Shown: positions 9,101 to 15,100, counted from the first letter of the stretch. The stretch is DNA of 64,000 bases from Salpingoeca rosetta (GCA_033442325.1 JAWQFM010000015.1:1137614-1201613), one strand, 5' to 3'. A program made the numbers and translations. Notes: a model not told the origin generated them from the letters alone.

Positions 9101-12100
9101 ACCACTCCCACAGCGACAAGTACAGCCAGGCGGGCCTGACCACGCTCGTACGCGAACAGCTCTCGCGCACCCAGCAGGACGACGAGGTGGCGGGCCTGGT
9201 CAAGCAGGTGCTGGAGTGCGCCAGCAACAAGGAGCAGGTGTTTGTGTACGAGGTGGACTTTTACGGCCGGCACGACGTTCCGCTTGATGTCGCCATTCTG
9301 GACGCTATTCTCCAGTGGGAAAGGTAGGCATGCACACGCACGCTGGTAGCAGTTTTGTTGTTGTTGTTGTTGTTGTTGTTGTTGTTGTTGTTGTTGTTGT
9401 TGTTGTTGTTGTTGTTGTTGTTGTTGTTGTTGTTGTTGTTGTTGTTGTTGTTGTTGTTGTTGTTGTTGTTGTTACTGCGAGGCGGCCACGCTGATGCGAG
9501 TGGGGGATGTTTGTCGTGTGTCTTCTGATTTATTCGCCTGTTGCATTGTGCGAGACACAGCTCACTCCCGAACAAACCAACCAGCGAACAAGCGAACATG
9601 CAAACGAACAAATGACTTCACTTATCATATCTGCACACTCACAAACACACTCACAAACACACACTCACACACAAACACACTCTCTCGTTCTCACTGATGA
9701 CCACGTGCGCGCTGATGACGGCTGCAGCTATCGAATCGAGCACGGGGAGCTGGCGTGGCTGCTGGCGGAGGACGTGCCGCAGGAACACCGGAAAAAAGAG
9801 CGCTCGTTTCGGGCGGAGCTGCGAAAGGCGCGACTGCTTGAGCTCGCCTTGACATGGGACAGGATCGACGTGGCAAGGTTTGTTGTGGTGGGATGTGGTG
9901 GGCTGTGGTGGCGTTGATGTTGGAGAGGCACGGCTCATTGTTGTTTATTGTGCTCATTCGTTGCTGTGACATGACGGTTCTGACCAGACAAGAGACTGCC
10001 AAGTACCGCGTGCTGAAGGACTTTGACGACAAAATCGCATCAGATCCAATCACACAGTATGACGCCAGCACTGTTTTTTTCCTGATGGGCCTGGACGTAC
10101 ATGTATCCGTTCATGGGGTCTTGCGTCCATGTGGGTGTGCGTGCGTGCTGTTCACGCCTGCTTCGTGCCGAGAGAGAGAGAGAGAGAGAGAGAGAGAGAG
10201 AGAGAGAGAGAGAGTGTGTGTGTGTGTGTGTGTGTGTGTGTGTGTGTGTGTGTGTGTGTGTGTGTGTGTGTGTGTGTGTGCGAGAGTTTTCCTCACGCCA
10301 CTACTCGTCGTCGTCATTGGCTATCCAGGGCAAAGGCACGCATGCTCAAGTGGGCGCTGGTCAACAATCGCCAGGCGTTTGTGCAGGTGAGCTGCAACGT
10401 TGATTTCGGCATATCCATTCAATATCACGCACGGAACGCTGACATGCTTCGCGCGCACACTCACACGCGCGATCTTCGTTTGCTTGTTTGCTTGTTCGTT
10501 CGTGTGTTCGTTTGTTTGTTCGTTGGTTTTTTCGTTTGTTTGTTTGTGCTCTCACTCTGACGCGATCACTAACGCTCACTCGTGTCACCTCCTCACACAA
10601 ACACACACACGCATATTTTGGTGCAGATTTTCCTCGAGACGATGGACACGCAGGACGTGACGGCGTTTCTGCGCACCCCGACAACATCAGGCCTCACCCT
10701 GCCCTCTCTCCGCAAGATCTCGCACTCCCGCTCAAAGTACAGCGGCATGCCATTGTCTGAGCAGCGGCTCACACACGTGGTGTTGTGGCTTTGGCATAGC
10801 GCAGTCATAGCCCGTGCGCATCGCTGCACTAAGCAGCAACGACCAGTGCTCAACAGTGTTTTCTCACACTAACCTGCGTTGCGTGCATGTACATATATGT
10901 GTGTGTGTGTCTTTCAGGACGCGTGCGAAAGGACGGGCAAGGCAAATGGTGCGTCACCGGAACACTTGTTTTCACAAACGCTGCGCGCATAACTTCACAA
11001 ACACAACACGTGTGCAGTCTGTTCAACGTTTCGCATGTTCACACACGCACACACACTTGCCTCGCTCCTTTTCTCTTGATGCTGTCAGATCAAGTGGAGC
11101 AACTTGAAGCACCGGTTCTCCGTCCCACTGCCACCGACGCTCAACACCGACCCGCTGCCGGCCCACTGCCACTCCCTGCTCGCGGTCAGTTGCTGGTTAG
11201 CGTGTGCAGCGTGTGCAGCGTGCACACACACACACACACACACACACACACACACACAAGTTCGTGCCCTGCTCTCATTGCCAGTATATGCCAACGCTCC
11301 TGCCTGTACGCCTGCCTCCTCCTTCAGGACATTGCTGCAACGAAGATGTACTGTGACCTGAAGGAGCTGTTCCAGTCGCGCCTGACGATCACCCAGCGCG
11401 AGATGCGGCAATACGACTTCAACATCGACTTTGACCACGACGACGTTGCCGACATTCGCAAGCGCGAGGAACTCATCATCGAGGTGACGATGGCGGTGTG
11501 GGTGTTATTGTTTGCATTGGCTGACGTTTGCGTGAAAAAGGACTATCATTTTTCGCACACGCTTGCAAACACGCACATATGAAAACACACACACACGCAC
11601 ACACACACACACACACACACACACACACACACACACACACACACACCCTCTCTCACTCTCACTCACTCACTCAGTCATCTCACTCACACACACGCTCTCT
11701 GTCTCACTGAATGCACATGCCCTGATGTTCAAGGCGAACAAACGGTTCACGATGGCCAACGGGGCCAATGCATGGCACATGCTCTCGTACTTTGACGTCT
11801 TCTTCGTCCGATTCCTGGTGATGCCACATTCCTGGCATTTGTCTTCTGTCTCACACGTGATGGGCTGCGCTGGCACAATGCAACATATCACCATTGTCTA
11901 CCTATCCTCACGTCCCATCCAACCACTTGTACCACCACCACTGCCACGATTCATGTCACTCCCGCCAGTTTGCGCAAGGATTTATGGTGTCACGCATCCC
12001 TGTGTCGTCTTCTGGCCCGCCACCACGCCACGCGGAGGCCATCGAAGGGCTCACGCGCGCCATCCACCTCATCTGGGTCCATCGCATGGTTGGTGCACAC

Positions 12101-15100
12101 ACCCCGCTCAGTTCCCTGCGGTTGTCTCTGCCGGATTGCGCATCTGGCCGTGTCTGAGTCTTGTTTCTCATGGATTGTGTGCTCGTGGATTGTGTGTGTG
12201 TGTGTGTGTTTGTGTCTGTCTGTCTCTGTCTCTGTCTCTGTCTCTGTCTCTGTCTCTCCCTTTCTCCCCCTCTCCCCCCCCTCTCTCCCCCTCCCCCCCC
12301 ACACTAACACCCACTCTATCTGTCTCTCTCTGTCTCCATCCCCCAATCACTTCTTTCCTGTCATACCGCTCACGCCATCAACGCGCGATTGCTGCACAGC
12401 TCGACGACGGCTGGTCCTATGGAAAGGCGCTGGACGAAGAGATGCAGGAGTCACCGCTCATCTGCGCTTATGACAATCAGAACGACGGCAGCGCGTTCCT
12501 CAACGAAGACATCAAACACGACATGCGCGCACACGGTCCGTTATCCTCATCGTCTCTTTGCTTGAGATGGAACTGACACGCGCAGCTGCGCGCACGTTTG
12601 TGCTCACCGCACGTCCTGAGCCTGCACACATACACATACGCGCGTACACGTGAGCATGCACACGTCCACATACCCATGCACAAGTACATGTGCACATTTA
12701 CATTTGCGCATGTGCACACATTCCCTCACTTTGCGGCCCTGTCGTCCATACTTTCGCTTATCCGTGTACTCCTTCCGTTCTTCACTCGGCTGCAGCTGCG
12801 CGGTTTATGGAGACGCTGTATTCGTCCATGCGCATCGTCATCTGGCAGCCGAACACGCTGGAGAGTCTCTTCATCCACCCAACACTCACCCGCACCCCAC
12901 GGCACAACGCAAAGTACACCCACCTCGTCAGCCTCTTCCCGGTGGGTCGTGTGTGTGTGCGTGTGCGTGGGTGTGTGTGTGTGCGTGCGTGTGTGTTTGT
13001 GTGTGTGTGTGTGTGCGTGTGTGTGTGTGTGTGTGTGTGTGTGTGTGTGTGTGTGTGTGTGTGTGTGTGTGTGTGTGTGTGTGTCTGTGTGCTCTTGCAT
13101 TTTTTCTACGTCTGTGTCTTTCTTCAGGTGCTGCATGTCGTGGGTAATTCTGCTTCCTTGCGCTCGTGCTCACTGTCACATTGTTGTTGGATTGCCTCCT
13201 TTCTCTCACACTTAGGGTGGCTCGTTCTGGGAGAGCCAAATTCGTCATGTGGTGAGCCAGTGCCCTCGCTCGCCTTGCTCTTGCTGCATATCTGCTCATT
13301 CAACAATTTGTAACTGTTCATGTGCGAGTACGAAGCTGTGTTGACCTGCTTTTCCTTGTCACGTGTTCACCACGTGCTATCGCCCTTCCTGCTGCTGTTC
13401 AGCTGGCTGAGGCGGTGCACTCGGATGCAGAATACGTCTACTTGTTTGAACTGGACCCATTTTTCCTCTTGGCTGTACGTCCATATGATTGGTGTTTCTC
13501 GCTCCCTTGCTCTCGTCCATGCCCGTGTCAACACACTCGTGCACTCGCTGGATACCACACTCACACGACCAGTGACACGCGCACACACGCGCACACGCAC
13601 ACACGCACGTGGACGATGGCGCGTCACTCACGTTGGTCTTGCTGCTGCTACCTGTGGTTGTGTCAGGTGTGGGCAGCAGTGACCAACTTTCCAAGGCTCA
13701 CGAAATACTTTTGGCACCTCAGTCCGCAGTACGTATCGCACCACGCAGTCCCGCCTGTATTTTTCATGAGTTTGTAGCACCTGCGCGCCCTCACACAACA
13801 TGCGTGTACGTGTGTGTGTGTGTGCGTGTGTGTGTGTGTGTGCGTGTGTGTGTGTGCGTGTGTGCGTGTGTGTGTGTGTGTGTGTGTGTGTGTGTGTGTG
13901 TGTGTGTGTGTGTGTGTGTGTGAAGGTCGGCGATTCCAAATGGGCTGGTGTTGACGCTGGTGGTGAAGGCTGCCCTCGAACACGACGAGAAACTGCCGGT
14001 AGGAATTGCACACCTGTTCCTTCTGCTGATCGCACCAGCCCAACCACACCCGATTGCCACACTTACATGCGTGCGTGCGTGCGTGTGTGTGACTCCTGCT
14101 TGTTCTCCCCTCCCCCATTTTCTTCTCTTTGTTGTTCCCTGTTGTTTGTTGTTGGACTCACCCCCTCCCGTTCCGCACGCCCTGGGCTACCCGTTCAACA
14201 ATGCGTGCGGTGCGTGTCGGGTTTCCATCAGCCGGAGAGCATTGTTGTGTTTGAAGGTCTCGCAAACGACATCATGGAGGAGTGCGTCGATATTCTCAAC
14301 CACATTGACCAGCGCAACTCGAGTACGTGTGTCTTTGGAATTGTGCAAGTCTTGGCCGCTCTGACTTAGCTGAATGGTCCATGTCACATGAATGGAACTT
14401 GCAGCACACAACGCGCACACTACTCGTATTTGCATTCGCATACATGTACGCGGCTGCGTATTAACAGAACGCATGTGCACACACATACGAATGCCGCTCA
14501 CTCTCCTCCCCCCCCCCCACACACACACGCCCATGTCGCCACACCAGAGCTTGCTGAGCGCATCCTGCGGAGTCGACCCGTGAATGGCGGGATGGTGCAG
14601 ACCACCACGCTCGCATACCGCATTGGATATGAGGCATTTGTCGCCACAGACGCATTCCTGCGTGTCCTCAACTACCTCTGGGTGAGCTCAACACAGCTGT
14701 GGATCGGGAAAGGGGATGAGGGACGGAAGAGGAAAGAGGTTTCGGCCTGCGACTAACTAACTTTTCGTTTCGACACATGTTGCATGTTGTGTTTTGATGC
14801 AACGTGTTTGTGTTGTAACATCAAAATGTGCAGCCTTTTGTCTTCCTGTGCCGTTCATCGCTTGCATGCTCACATATGTGTGTTTGTTCCGCCCATTTTT
14901 CTCACGTGTGCTGTGGCTTTGTGACAACTTCCAGTACGACAACGTGGATCCAACCAACGGTCTCATCAAGATTTTCATCGCTGCACTCTTCCCGTTCTAC
15001 CTCGTCATTCCCGGAGAGCAGCTCAAGTAAGAGGAGGGGAGAATGTGTGTTTGCATGTGTGTGAGGGGGAGAGGGGAGAAGCTTGCACAGGGGAGAAGCT

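Follow-up and report, generated by a model that had tools for sequence, protein, structure and literature searches.

TRPM2-type channels are a model for nucleotide gating of a cation channel, the nucleotide being ADP-ribose. In the TRPM2 "chanzyme" of the choanoflagellate Salpingoeca rosetta (srTRPM2), two residues of the MHR1/2 site, F268 and R275, are essential for activation by ADP-ribose, MHR3/4 and the rib helix constitute a "signal transduction layer" whose rotation couples ligand binding to gating, and NUDT9-H serves both as an enzyme and as a modulatory module (PMC11479946). In the ryanodine receptor (RyR) RyR1, the RY12 domain is an ADP sensor in which adenine stacks on W882, and ADP or ATP makes its cleft close whether or not dantrolene is present (PMC13642953). 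RyR-domain proteins of phages bind and, in one case (RyDEP), cleave 2'/3' cyclic ADP-ribose (cADPR) via H75, W78, H100, and D117, and most phage homologues that keep the RyDEP residues bind without cleaving (PMC13232231). Among eukaryotes, a 2016 review placed RyR domains in RyRs, oomycete PKDRR channels, and oomycete calmodulin (CaM) kinases only, PKDRR being a PKD/TRPP-type channel domain with tandem RyR domains near the C-terminus (PMC4820453). The locus described here, PTSG_06043 of S. rosetta, lies on a 64,000-nucleotide stretch of DNA (GCA_033442325.1, JAWQFM010000015.1:1137614-1201613), referred to below as the window and numbered from its first letter. It almost certainly encodes a TRPM2-like cation channel that carries an RyR-type domain in a ~226-residue insertion of the helical MHR3 part.

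That three exons of a TRPM gene in the window encode an RyR repeat, within a larger MHR3/4 insertion of a channel that lacks NUDT9-H, had been proposed from the DNA sequence alone (the original prediction). The features of the gene are as follows.

6194 to 19360, + strand: TRPM-type channel gene PTSG_06043 (protein mapping, Pfam and PDB matches)
6846 to 9219, + strand: SLOG/MHR1-2 domain, residues 78-349, in several exons (Pfam PF18139; includes F233 and R240)
11161 to 12848, + strand: the whole module, predicted to be Repeat12-like, residues ~548-738 (superposition on RyR3, exon map, RNA-seq joints)
11089-11184, 11328-11483, 11734-11817, 11969-12088, 12400-12535, and 12796-12941, + strand: the six module exons (all joints seen in RNA-seq)
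11161 to 12004, + strand: putative degenerate repeat 1, residues ~548-647, closing with a helix and then the strand GFMVS (weak profile signals and a structural model)
11969 to 12088, + strand: exon A, residues 636-675, with the end of repeat 1, the linker, and helix 1 (H668, W671) of the canonical repeat
12089 to 12399, + strand: intron of 311 nucleotides, GT..AG, with (GT)n and (CT)n low-complexity runs (joint 12087>12399)
12400 to 12535, + strand: exon B, residues 676-720 plus one base, with the GWSYG turn, S693-P694, the NQNDGSAF insertion, and the start of helix 2
12536 to 12795, + strand: intron of 260 nucleotides, GT..AG (joint 12534>12795)
12796 to 12941, + strand: exon C, residues 721-769, with the remainder of helix 2, the closing strand RIVIW (to ~12848), and a conserved IWQPxTLExL segment leading back into MHR3
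16124 to 18056, + strand: transmembrane channel domain, residues 1067-1305 (Pfam Ion_trans; alignment to srTRPM2 790-1109)

Exon B, used as a HMMER query against 1.84 billion representative proteins, matched a single one of them, protein P0001, at 100% identity over residues 676-720. The name of this protein, PTSG_06043, is taken from NCBI/UniRef, and exact protein-to-window mapping places its 1435 residues in 40 coding exons at 6194-19360 on the + strand. The window resembles a choanoflagellate genome in its many short exons and in introns rich in (GT)n runs. Exons A, B, and C are each preceded by cag and followed by gt, and joined they yield 402 nucleotides in one open frame, the translation of which is identical to residues 636-769 of annotated PTSG_06043. 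The peptide originally predicted from three in-phase exons occurs in this splice exactly. The span assigned to it, 11969-12830, was right in its start and in its exons and wrong in its end: position 12830 falls inside exon C, where the canonical repeat continues to ~12848 and the exon itself to 12941.

Expression was followed in RNA-seq data from three studies, comprising two stranded raw-read runs and the contigs of two further runs, mapped on 10450-16440; the best-supported 15 of 25 splice joints are considered here. The joints 11816>11968, 12087>12399 (skipping 311 nucleotides), and 12534>12795 (skipping 260) are all GT..AG and are each carried by 9-25 reads per raw-read run. For the second the counts are 18 and 9 reads plus two contigs, and for the third 25 and 23 reads plus two contigs. 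The joint-carrying reads start at many positions, and nearly all of the first mates are on the minus strand, which is the orientation expected for RNA of the + strand. Transcript contigs of 4329 and 2825 nucleotides contain exons A, B, and C together with upstream TRPM exons (10621-10736, 11088-11183, and 11327-11481), and the 4329-nucleotide contig additionally spans the downstream TRPM exons 14548-14680 and 16058-16266. Since single contigs join them to flanking TRPM exons, exons A-C are part of the TRPM mRNA rather than of a gene of their own, and the exon joins of the original prediction are thereby borne out. The three exons are constitutive in PTSG_06043 mRNA; a minor isoform without them may exist among joints beyond the best-supported 15 of 25.

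The same reads show a few irregularities within the gene. In the intron at 12536-12795, 15-28 reads or one contig in all four runs reach position 12642 and then continue into unlike sequence starting AGCAAGCGGAGCAAGCGGAGC; read depth near 12642 is above that of neighboring intron bins, and the cause is probably a CA-rich stretch common to another transcript. Both strands show extreme depth at 13450-13649, the word depth in the contig runs being ~3,000 and 30,000, and variants are present at 13587-13591. The center of this region is a CA/CG-rich low-complexity run in an intron, and it seems that reads of a very abundant RNA or repeat have cross-mapped here, not that the intron is expressed. Finally, 15292 G>T occurs in 6 of 19 reads of one run only, inside the coding exon 15253-15344, and could be a strain polymorphism or an error.

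RyR repeats carry a recognizable signature, consisting of H-x-x-W on helix 1, a G-W-x-Y-G turn, and (H)P-x-L-x-x-Y/F followed by an L before helix 2. The S. rosetta insert has H668, W671, G679, W680, Y682, G683, P694, and L709 at these positions, and the His before Pro is Ser693. Against the Pfam RyR model (PF02026), which has a gathering cut-off of 27.4 bits, the fragment 636-760 reaches 27.2 bits (E 4.6e-6) and the full-length protein 22.3 bits. Thus, the PF02026 comparison proposed with the original prediction gave a significant E value for the spliced peptide, and this sequence taken alone is 0.2 bits under the curated cut-off. The Pfam alignment breaks at profile position 62, at an insertion of 8-9 residues before helix 2 (NQNDGSAF in S. 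rosetta) that is common to the proteins of S. rosetta, Microstomoeca roanoka, Barroeca monosierra, and Choanoeca perplexa. Public precomputed domain lists give no PF02026 for PTSG_06043, probably because the 8-residue insertion breaks the alignment. Taken singly, the exons are too short to decide the matter by Pfam: exon B has a weak RyR match (E 0.13), and exons A and C have none.

Searches beyond Pfam point to the same family. A phmmer search of all PDB sequences with residues 636-760 gave 58 matches to E 10, all of which are ryanodine receptors or the bacterial "putative ryanodine receptor" of Bacteroides thetaiotaomicron, with a best E of 9.5e-11. No match on the domain was obtained with NCBIfam, and the sole match in PHROGs was phrog_5154 (function unassigned; E 8e-4). 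In the ESM Atlas, residues 640-750 scored 0.81-0.82 to TRPM2-like clusters, values within the chance range that probably reflect whole-protein context. A word-based search with residues 600-790 among long proteins returned only the query, and one with residues 640-750 among short proteins returned nothing. The latter nulls are a limit of sensitivity, because a whole-protein search then yielded 11 further proteins with the insert at the same place, answering the call in the original prediction for a search of other choanoflagellates. The 12 insert-bearing sequences represent ten named species, including S. rosetta, and two Logan assemblies. The craspedid and acanthoecid carriers other than S. 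rosetta are M. roanoka, B. monosierra, Hartaetosiga balthica, Salpingoeca infusionum, C. perplexa, Didymoeca costata, Stephanoeca diplocostata, Acanthoecidae sp. 10tr, and Acanthoeca spectabilis.

All 12 inserts match Pfam RyR at the homologous position, with 19.9-53.4 bits, and eight of them are above the cut-off. When a profile of the 12 repeat regions was compared with the PDB, RyR2 was matched at E 2.9e-35, each of the 65 matches was an RyR or a bacterial RyR domain, and the alignments spanned the full repeat. By individual repeat of RyR2, this clade profile scores 46.9, 35.2, 27.8, and 8.9 bits, and the single-repeat protein of B. thetaiotaomicron scores 52.9 bits. Conversely, a profile made from the RyR open reading frames (ORFs) of viral contigs alone, run against 123 TRPM-family proteins, matches exactly the members of the insert-bearing clade, at the position of the insert.

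The viral ORFs deserve separate mention. A 16-base degenerate pattern for H-x-x-W-x7-G-W-x-Y-G found at least 117 loci in IMG/VR viral contigs, nearly all of them genuine small RyR-domain ORFs. These are of two types: a short one that ends after helix 2, and a longer, "canonical" one that ends in GY.I (e.g., loci L094, L072, and L061). The TRPM clade profile scores the canonical type best, with up to 54.6 bits.

The domain was also modelled with AlphaFold2. Residues 636-760 without an alignment gave an unusable model, with a mean predicted local distance difference test score (pLDDT) of 38.8. With an alignment of the 12 TRPM inserts and 62 RyR sequences from viral contigs, pLDDT was 83-95 over residues 629-739, and the predicted fold is helix, turn, helix, and short strand, as in solved RyR repeats. 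The best 50 Foldseek matches of the model were without exception RyR proteins, namely Repeat12 domains, complete RyRs, or the bacterial protein. VIA-align superposed model positions 31-219 (550-738 of the protein) on RyR3 849-1053, that is, on the entire tandem Repeat12, with a Z of 11.0 and a root-mean-square deviation of 3.6 Å over 127 aligned residues. For bacterial single repeats, 89-91 of 92-95 residues could be aligned, at a Z of ~8; Z was 2.5 for the next unrelated chain. It counts against the model as a witness for the RyR fold that, because viral RyR sequences were present in the alignment over the second (canonical) repeat, the fold of this repeat is partly imposed by homology. The upstream half, referred to as repeat 1, was modelled from the 12 TRPM sequences alone.

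A scarcely credible alternative is that the resemblance to RyR repeats arose by chance, or that a fused annotation misattached the exons to the TRPM gene. Single-protein Pfam scores of 22.3 (whole) and 27.2 (fragment) against a cut-off of 27.4, together with the missing PF02026 in public tables, would agree with it. However, junction reads and single contigs run from TRPM exons into the module and out of it again, the same architecture recurs in independent transcriptomes of the ten named species and the two Logan assemblies, and the family-level E values of down to 1e-35 are accompanied by a fold match at Z 11. The alternative is refuted by the RNA-seq joints, the Pfam matches of the homologues, the clade profile, and the fold match, the last three of which, with the RyR-only PDB matches, also substantiate the RyR assignment first made from the exons.

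RyR repeats work in pairs, as tandems in RyRs and as homodimers in bacteria and phages. The insert, too, is quite probably a tandem, namely a Repeat12-like module with a sequence-decayed first repeat, to judge from the profiles and the model. The single inserted repeat of the original prediction was correctly recognized as canonical, and would be the second member of the pair rather than the whole of the module. In the D. costata protein (P0007), where repeat 1 and the pocket are better preserved, the stretch homologous to repeat 1 matches Pfam RyR positions 7-91 with 19.3 bits (E 1.4e-3). Alignment of the upstream profile with the repeat 2 profile by hhalign places 73 columns in register (E 3.5e-4, probability 37%); the elements that correspond are helix 1 and the turn after it, the L that precedes helix 2, and GY.V in the closing strand. 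Three observations weigh against a tandem. The profile of the upstream half has no meaningful match in the PDB, the repeat 1 part of the model has a pLDDT of ~40-65 except in its last helix and strand, and repeat 1 of S. rosetta is without His-x-x-Trp, so that nothing stands for the second stacking wall seen in the RY12 cleft.

The host of the module is TRPM2-like throughout. Pfam matches of PTSG_06043 are LSDAT_euk (1.2e-69), Ion_trans (4.9e-17), and, weakly, the TRPM2-like domain, and its best sixty PDB matches are all TRPM1-8, with the S. rosetta TRPM2 chanzyme at the top (2e-111). The S6/TRP motif is present, as are the features of the TRPM family, i.e., SLOG/MHR, a six-helix channel domain, a TRP helix, and a C-terminal coiled coil. 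Alignment to the srTRPM2 chanzyme (8SR7/8SRJ) covers residues 75-379, 803-961, and 1045-1367. Residues 379-803 (424 in number) lie opposite chanzyme residues 404-602 (198), an excess of ~226 residues in the MHR3 part that corresponds to the larger MHR3/4 insertion of the original prediction. A second excess occurs at residues 961-1045 of the protein (window ~15270-15860), between MHR4 and S1, where ~84 residues stand against 29 in srTRPM2 and no Pfam domain is matched.

F233 and R240, the equivalents of the ADP-ribose-binding F268 and R275 of srTRPM2, are kept in 12 of 12 insert-bearing TRPMs. So is the S2-S3 Ca2+ site, with E/D-E-x-x-Q in S2 and N-x-x-D in S3 (EE..Q and N..D in S. rosetta), and the pore motif is likewise kept across the 12. 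Conservation of the MHR1/2 Phe and Arg, the Ca2+ site, and the pore motif therefore makes gating by Ca2+ plus ADP-ribose the default expectation for these channels. The NUDT9-H domain is a different matter: the Pfam scan gave no match to NUDT9-H or Nudix (PF00293, PF25969), and the tail after S6 of PTSG_06043 is 150 residues long, which agrees with the absence originally noted. Across the 12 insert-bearing TRPMs, post-S6 length is 143-180 residues versus 376-496 in Nudix-bearing relatives. The whole-protein Pfam scan of PTSG_06043 gave no RIH, SPRY, or RyR/IP3R-type channel domain, so the repeat alone is common with RyRs.

In a maximum-likelihood tree of 34 TRPMs (1055 columns), the 12 insert-bearing proteins form one clade with an SH-aLRT of 100. 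This clade splits into Craspedida and Acanthoecida, and the insert label needs a single change on the tree. Its sister consists of choanoflagellate TRPM2-like proteins with long C-termini, one of them with a Nudix match. Given one clade, the same place of insertion, and carriers in both orders, the module was acquired once, before Craspedida and Acanthoecida split. As the insert and the short C-terminus occur together in 12 of 12 members, the RyR module was gained and NUDT9-H lost on the same branch, the stem of the clade. What was first described as a trait of this gene is thus present in it and is common to a choanoflagellate-wide TRPM clade. In the original prediction, animal TRPMs were not known to carry the repeat, and no PF02026 was found among the ~100 listed.

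The source of the module was addressed with the clade profile, which scores 54.6 bits on the canonical repeats of viral contigs, 52.9 on B. thetaiotaomicron, and 46.9 on RyR2 repeat 1; the scores are too close for an RyR-derived and a prokaryotic or viral source to be ranked. Searches with back-translated patterns confirmed no close viral or prokaryotic relatives. Within the clade, the acanthoecid homologues P0007, P0008, and P0009 are 200-450 residues longer and have precomputed PF13290/PF13287 matches (chitobiase/hexosaminidase C-terminal-like, Fn3-associated), apparently N-terminal to SLOG. This region would represent a further accessory module in the acanthoecid branch.

The pocket positions of RyR1 RY12 and RyDEP were mapped onto the clade. 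The equivalent of their ribose-contacting His (H668) is kept in 11 of the 12 sequences, and that of the Trp on which adenine stacks (W671) in all 12. Other positions weigh against nucleotide binding. The phosphate-binding His (RyR1 H904/RyDEP H100) is replaced by Ser in ten sequences and by Asp in two, the equivalent of RyR1 R897 is basic in none, and that of R886 is Lys or Arg in seven of 12, with Met in S. rosetta and in the two members closest to it. Acanthoecid members retain more basic residues, with Lys-Lys after the Trp and Arg after YG. The position of the RyDEP catalytic Asp (D117) is Asp in one sequence and Met, Leu, Cys, or Asn in the other 11, Met being the residue in S. rosetta.

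This last position bears on the reading of the module as a RyDEP-like glycosidase, which would convert cADPR isomers to ADP-ribose beside the channel's own ADP-ribose site and so make a new kind of "chanzyme". RyDEP and the module share a Pfam family, the kept H668 occupies the position of the catalytic His of RyDEP, and the clade descends from TRPM2 chanzyme-like ancestors with an enzyme module of their own. Yet the D117 equivalent is not Asp in 11 of 12 sequences, that of H100 is Ser or Asp, and even among phage homologues with the RyDEP residues most only bind. Enzymatic activity is accordingly very improbable, and the reading was rejected for want of the catalytic Asp.

The best explanation of the whole, to which we would give an even chance on the strength of sequence conservation and analogy, is a TRPM channel with an RyR module that acts as a non-enzymatic nucleotide-sensing or docking regulator on MHR3/4. 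In this scheme, the channel would still be opened by Ca2+ and ADP-ribose at the conserved MHR1/2 site, and the RyR module would form a second, non-catalytic regulatory site. An adenine ligand (ADP/ATP, ADP-ribose, or a cyclic ADP-ribose isomer) would be bound on the conserved His-x-x-Trp platform, and closing or docking of the module would bias MHR3/4 rotation, coupling ligand binding to the gate. The module would in this way functionally replace the lost NUDT9-H, much as the original prediction had supposed. Nucleotide sensing as such, again argued from the pocket residues and from RyR1 and phage relatives, falls somewhat short of an even chance.

Almost as likely as a non-catalytic adenine-platform module is one that is real but ligand-free, serving as a structural or protein-protein docking domain (subunit or channel contacts, anchoring, or a phosphorylation platform); such a role is possible, if below even. 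By analogy, no ligand need be involved, since in RyRs these domains are also sites of protein-protein contact and of phosphorylation. RyR domains have been described as intra- and intermolecular protein interaction sites (Zheng and Mackrill, PMC4820453). Loss of the phosphate-binding His and of basic pocket residues, the degenerate repeat 1 of S. rosetta with no His-x-x-Trp, and the conserved IWxPDxLExLY after the repeat, a possible interface, all fit docking. It is harder to reconcile with docking that near-invariance across the clade, the phage proteins, and RyRs is confined to the His and Trp in contact with the ligand and to the pocket-shaping GW.YG turn, or that the acanthoecid members retain more basic residues.

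A more ambitious version of the nucleotide-sensing regulator is tentative and rather doubtful. It holds that these proteins constitute an ancient choanoflagellate class, derived from TRPM2, in which a Repeat12-type nucleotide clamp in the MHR3/4 layer replaced NUDT9-H as second nucleotide site, with the ADP/ATP ratio or (cyclic) ADP-ribose-type signals tuning Ca2+ entry. If this is true, it would be the first channel outside RyRs to use the clamp, and a natural, small, and tractable system for the original role of the dantrolene/ADP site of RY12. It would then follow that, ahead of choanoflagellate diversification, the module passed from one of the two Ca2+-channel families to the other, or entered each of them from prokaryotes or viruses.

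A full-text literature search found no published description of a TRPM with an RyR domain, an earlier mention elsewhere being possible. A 2026 preprint on choanoflagellate transient receptor potential (TRP) channels screened six Pfam models and does not mention ryanodine or RyR, and a 2026 paper on gains and losses of TRPM domains in metazoans does not mention the TRPM-RyR architecture. The choanoflagellate survey thus missed the accessory domain that defines a conserved, choanoflagellate-wide TRPM subfamily, and the clade would extend the 2016 list of eukaryotic RyR-domain proteins (PMC4820453). RY12 was shown to be an ADP sensor and dantrolene site only in 2025-2026, and its phage relatives bind or cleave cyclic ADP-ribose signals. 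A TRPM2 core with an RY12-like module and NUDT9-H dropped links the fields of TRPM2, RY12, and phage cADPR. It raises the questions of whether the module binds ADP, ADP-ribose, or cADPR isomers and of whether binding would alter gating. Knock-outs and point mutants could be made, since S. rosetta is amenable to genetic manipulation.

Elsewhere in the window, a run of N (assembly gap) is found near 2500-2600, and a long direct duplication is evident from the identical translations of 3378-3548 and 4364-4534, ~986 nucleotides apart; both lie upstream of the TRPM gene, where the sequence is GC-rich. Within introns of the gene, long trinucleotide repeats occur at 9350-9480 and 17650-17780 (poly-Val, poly-Leu, or poly-Cys by frame), and (GT)n or (CA)n runs are present in most PTSG_06043 introns.

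Four known systems can be set beside this channel. The first is RyR Repeat12 (human RyR3 848-1055, PDB 6UHB and 9L91; RY12 of RyR1), with which the module has in common its Pfam family, two-helix repeats, and the H-x-x-W, GW.YG, and P-x-L-x-x-Y/F-x-L motifs. Both are cytosolic parts of a tetrameric Ca2+-permeable channel, both keep the adenine-stacking Trp, and the modelled module superposes on the whole tandem with a Z of 11.0. In contrast, the S. rosetta host is a TRPM without SPRY, RIH, or other RyR domains, repeat 1 of the TRPM module has lost the signature motifs, the phosphate His has become Ser, the basic pocket residues are partly lost, and the S. rosetta subclade has the 8-residue insertion before helix 2.

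The second is the srTRPM2 chanzyme (PDB 8SR7), a paralogue in the same genome (E 2e-111). PTSG_06043 has in common with it the ADP-ribose Phe and Arg of SLOG/MHR1-2, MHR3/4, the Ca2+ site, the pore motif, the TRP helix, and the coiled coil. It differs in lacking NUDT9-H, in its ~226 extra MHR3 residues with the RyR module, and in a further insertion of ~55 residues before S1.

The third comprises phage RyDEP and the single RyR proteins of bacteria (B. thetaiotaomicron 3NRT/6UAG; PMC13232231), which are alike in fold and motifs (Z 8, 52.9 bits) and whose ribose- and adenine-contacting His and Trp are kept in the clade. Unlike the TRPM module, which is an internal domain of a membrane channel, these are small soluble homodimers, and the His/Asp dyad of RyDEP is not kept in the TRPM module.

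The closest analogue by architecture is oomycete PKDRR (Mackrill 2012; Zheng and Mackrill 2016), the only other reported TRP-superfamily channel with tandem RyR domains outside RyRs. It is of polycystin rather than melastatin type, its RyR domains are C-terminal, after the pore, whereas those of PTSG_06043 are N-terminal, in MHR3, and it belongs to an unrelated, stramenopile lineage. Together with the choanoflagellate clade, the PKDRR case shows that channels have recruited the RyR module on more than one occasion.

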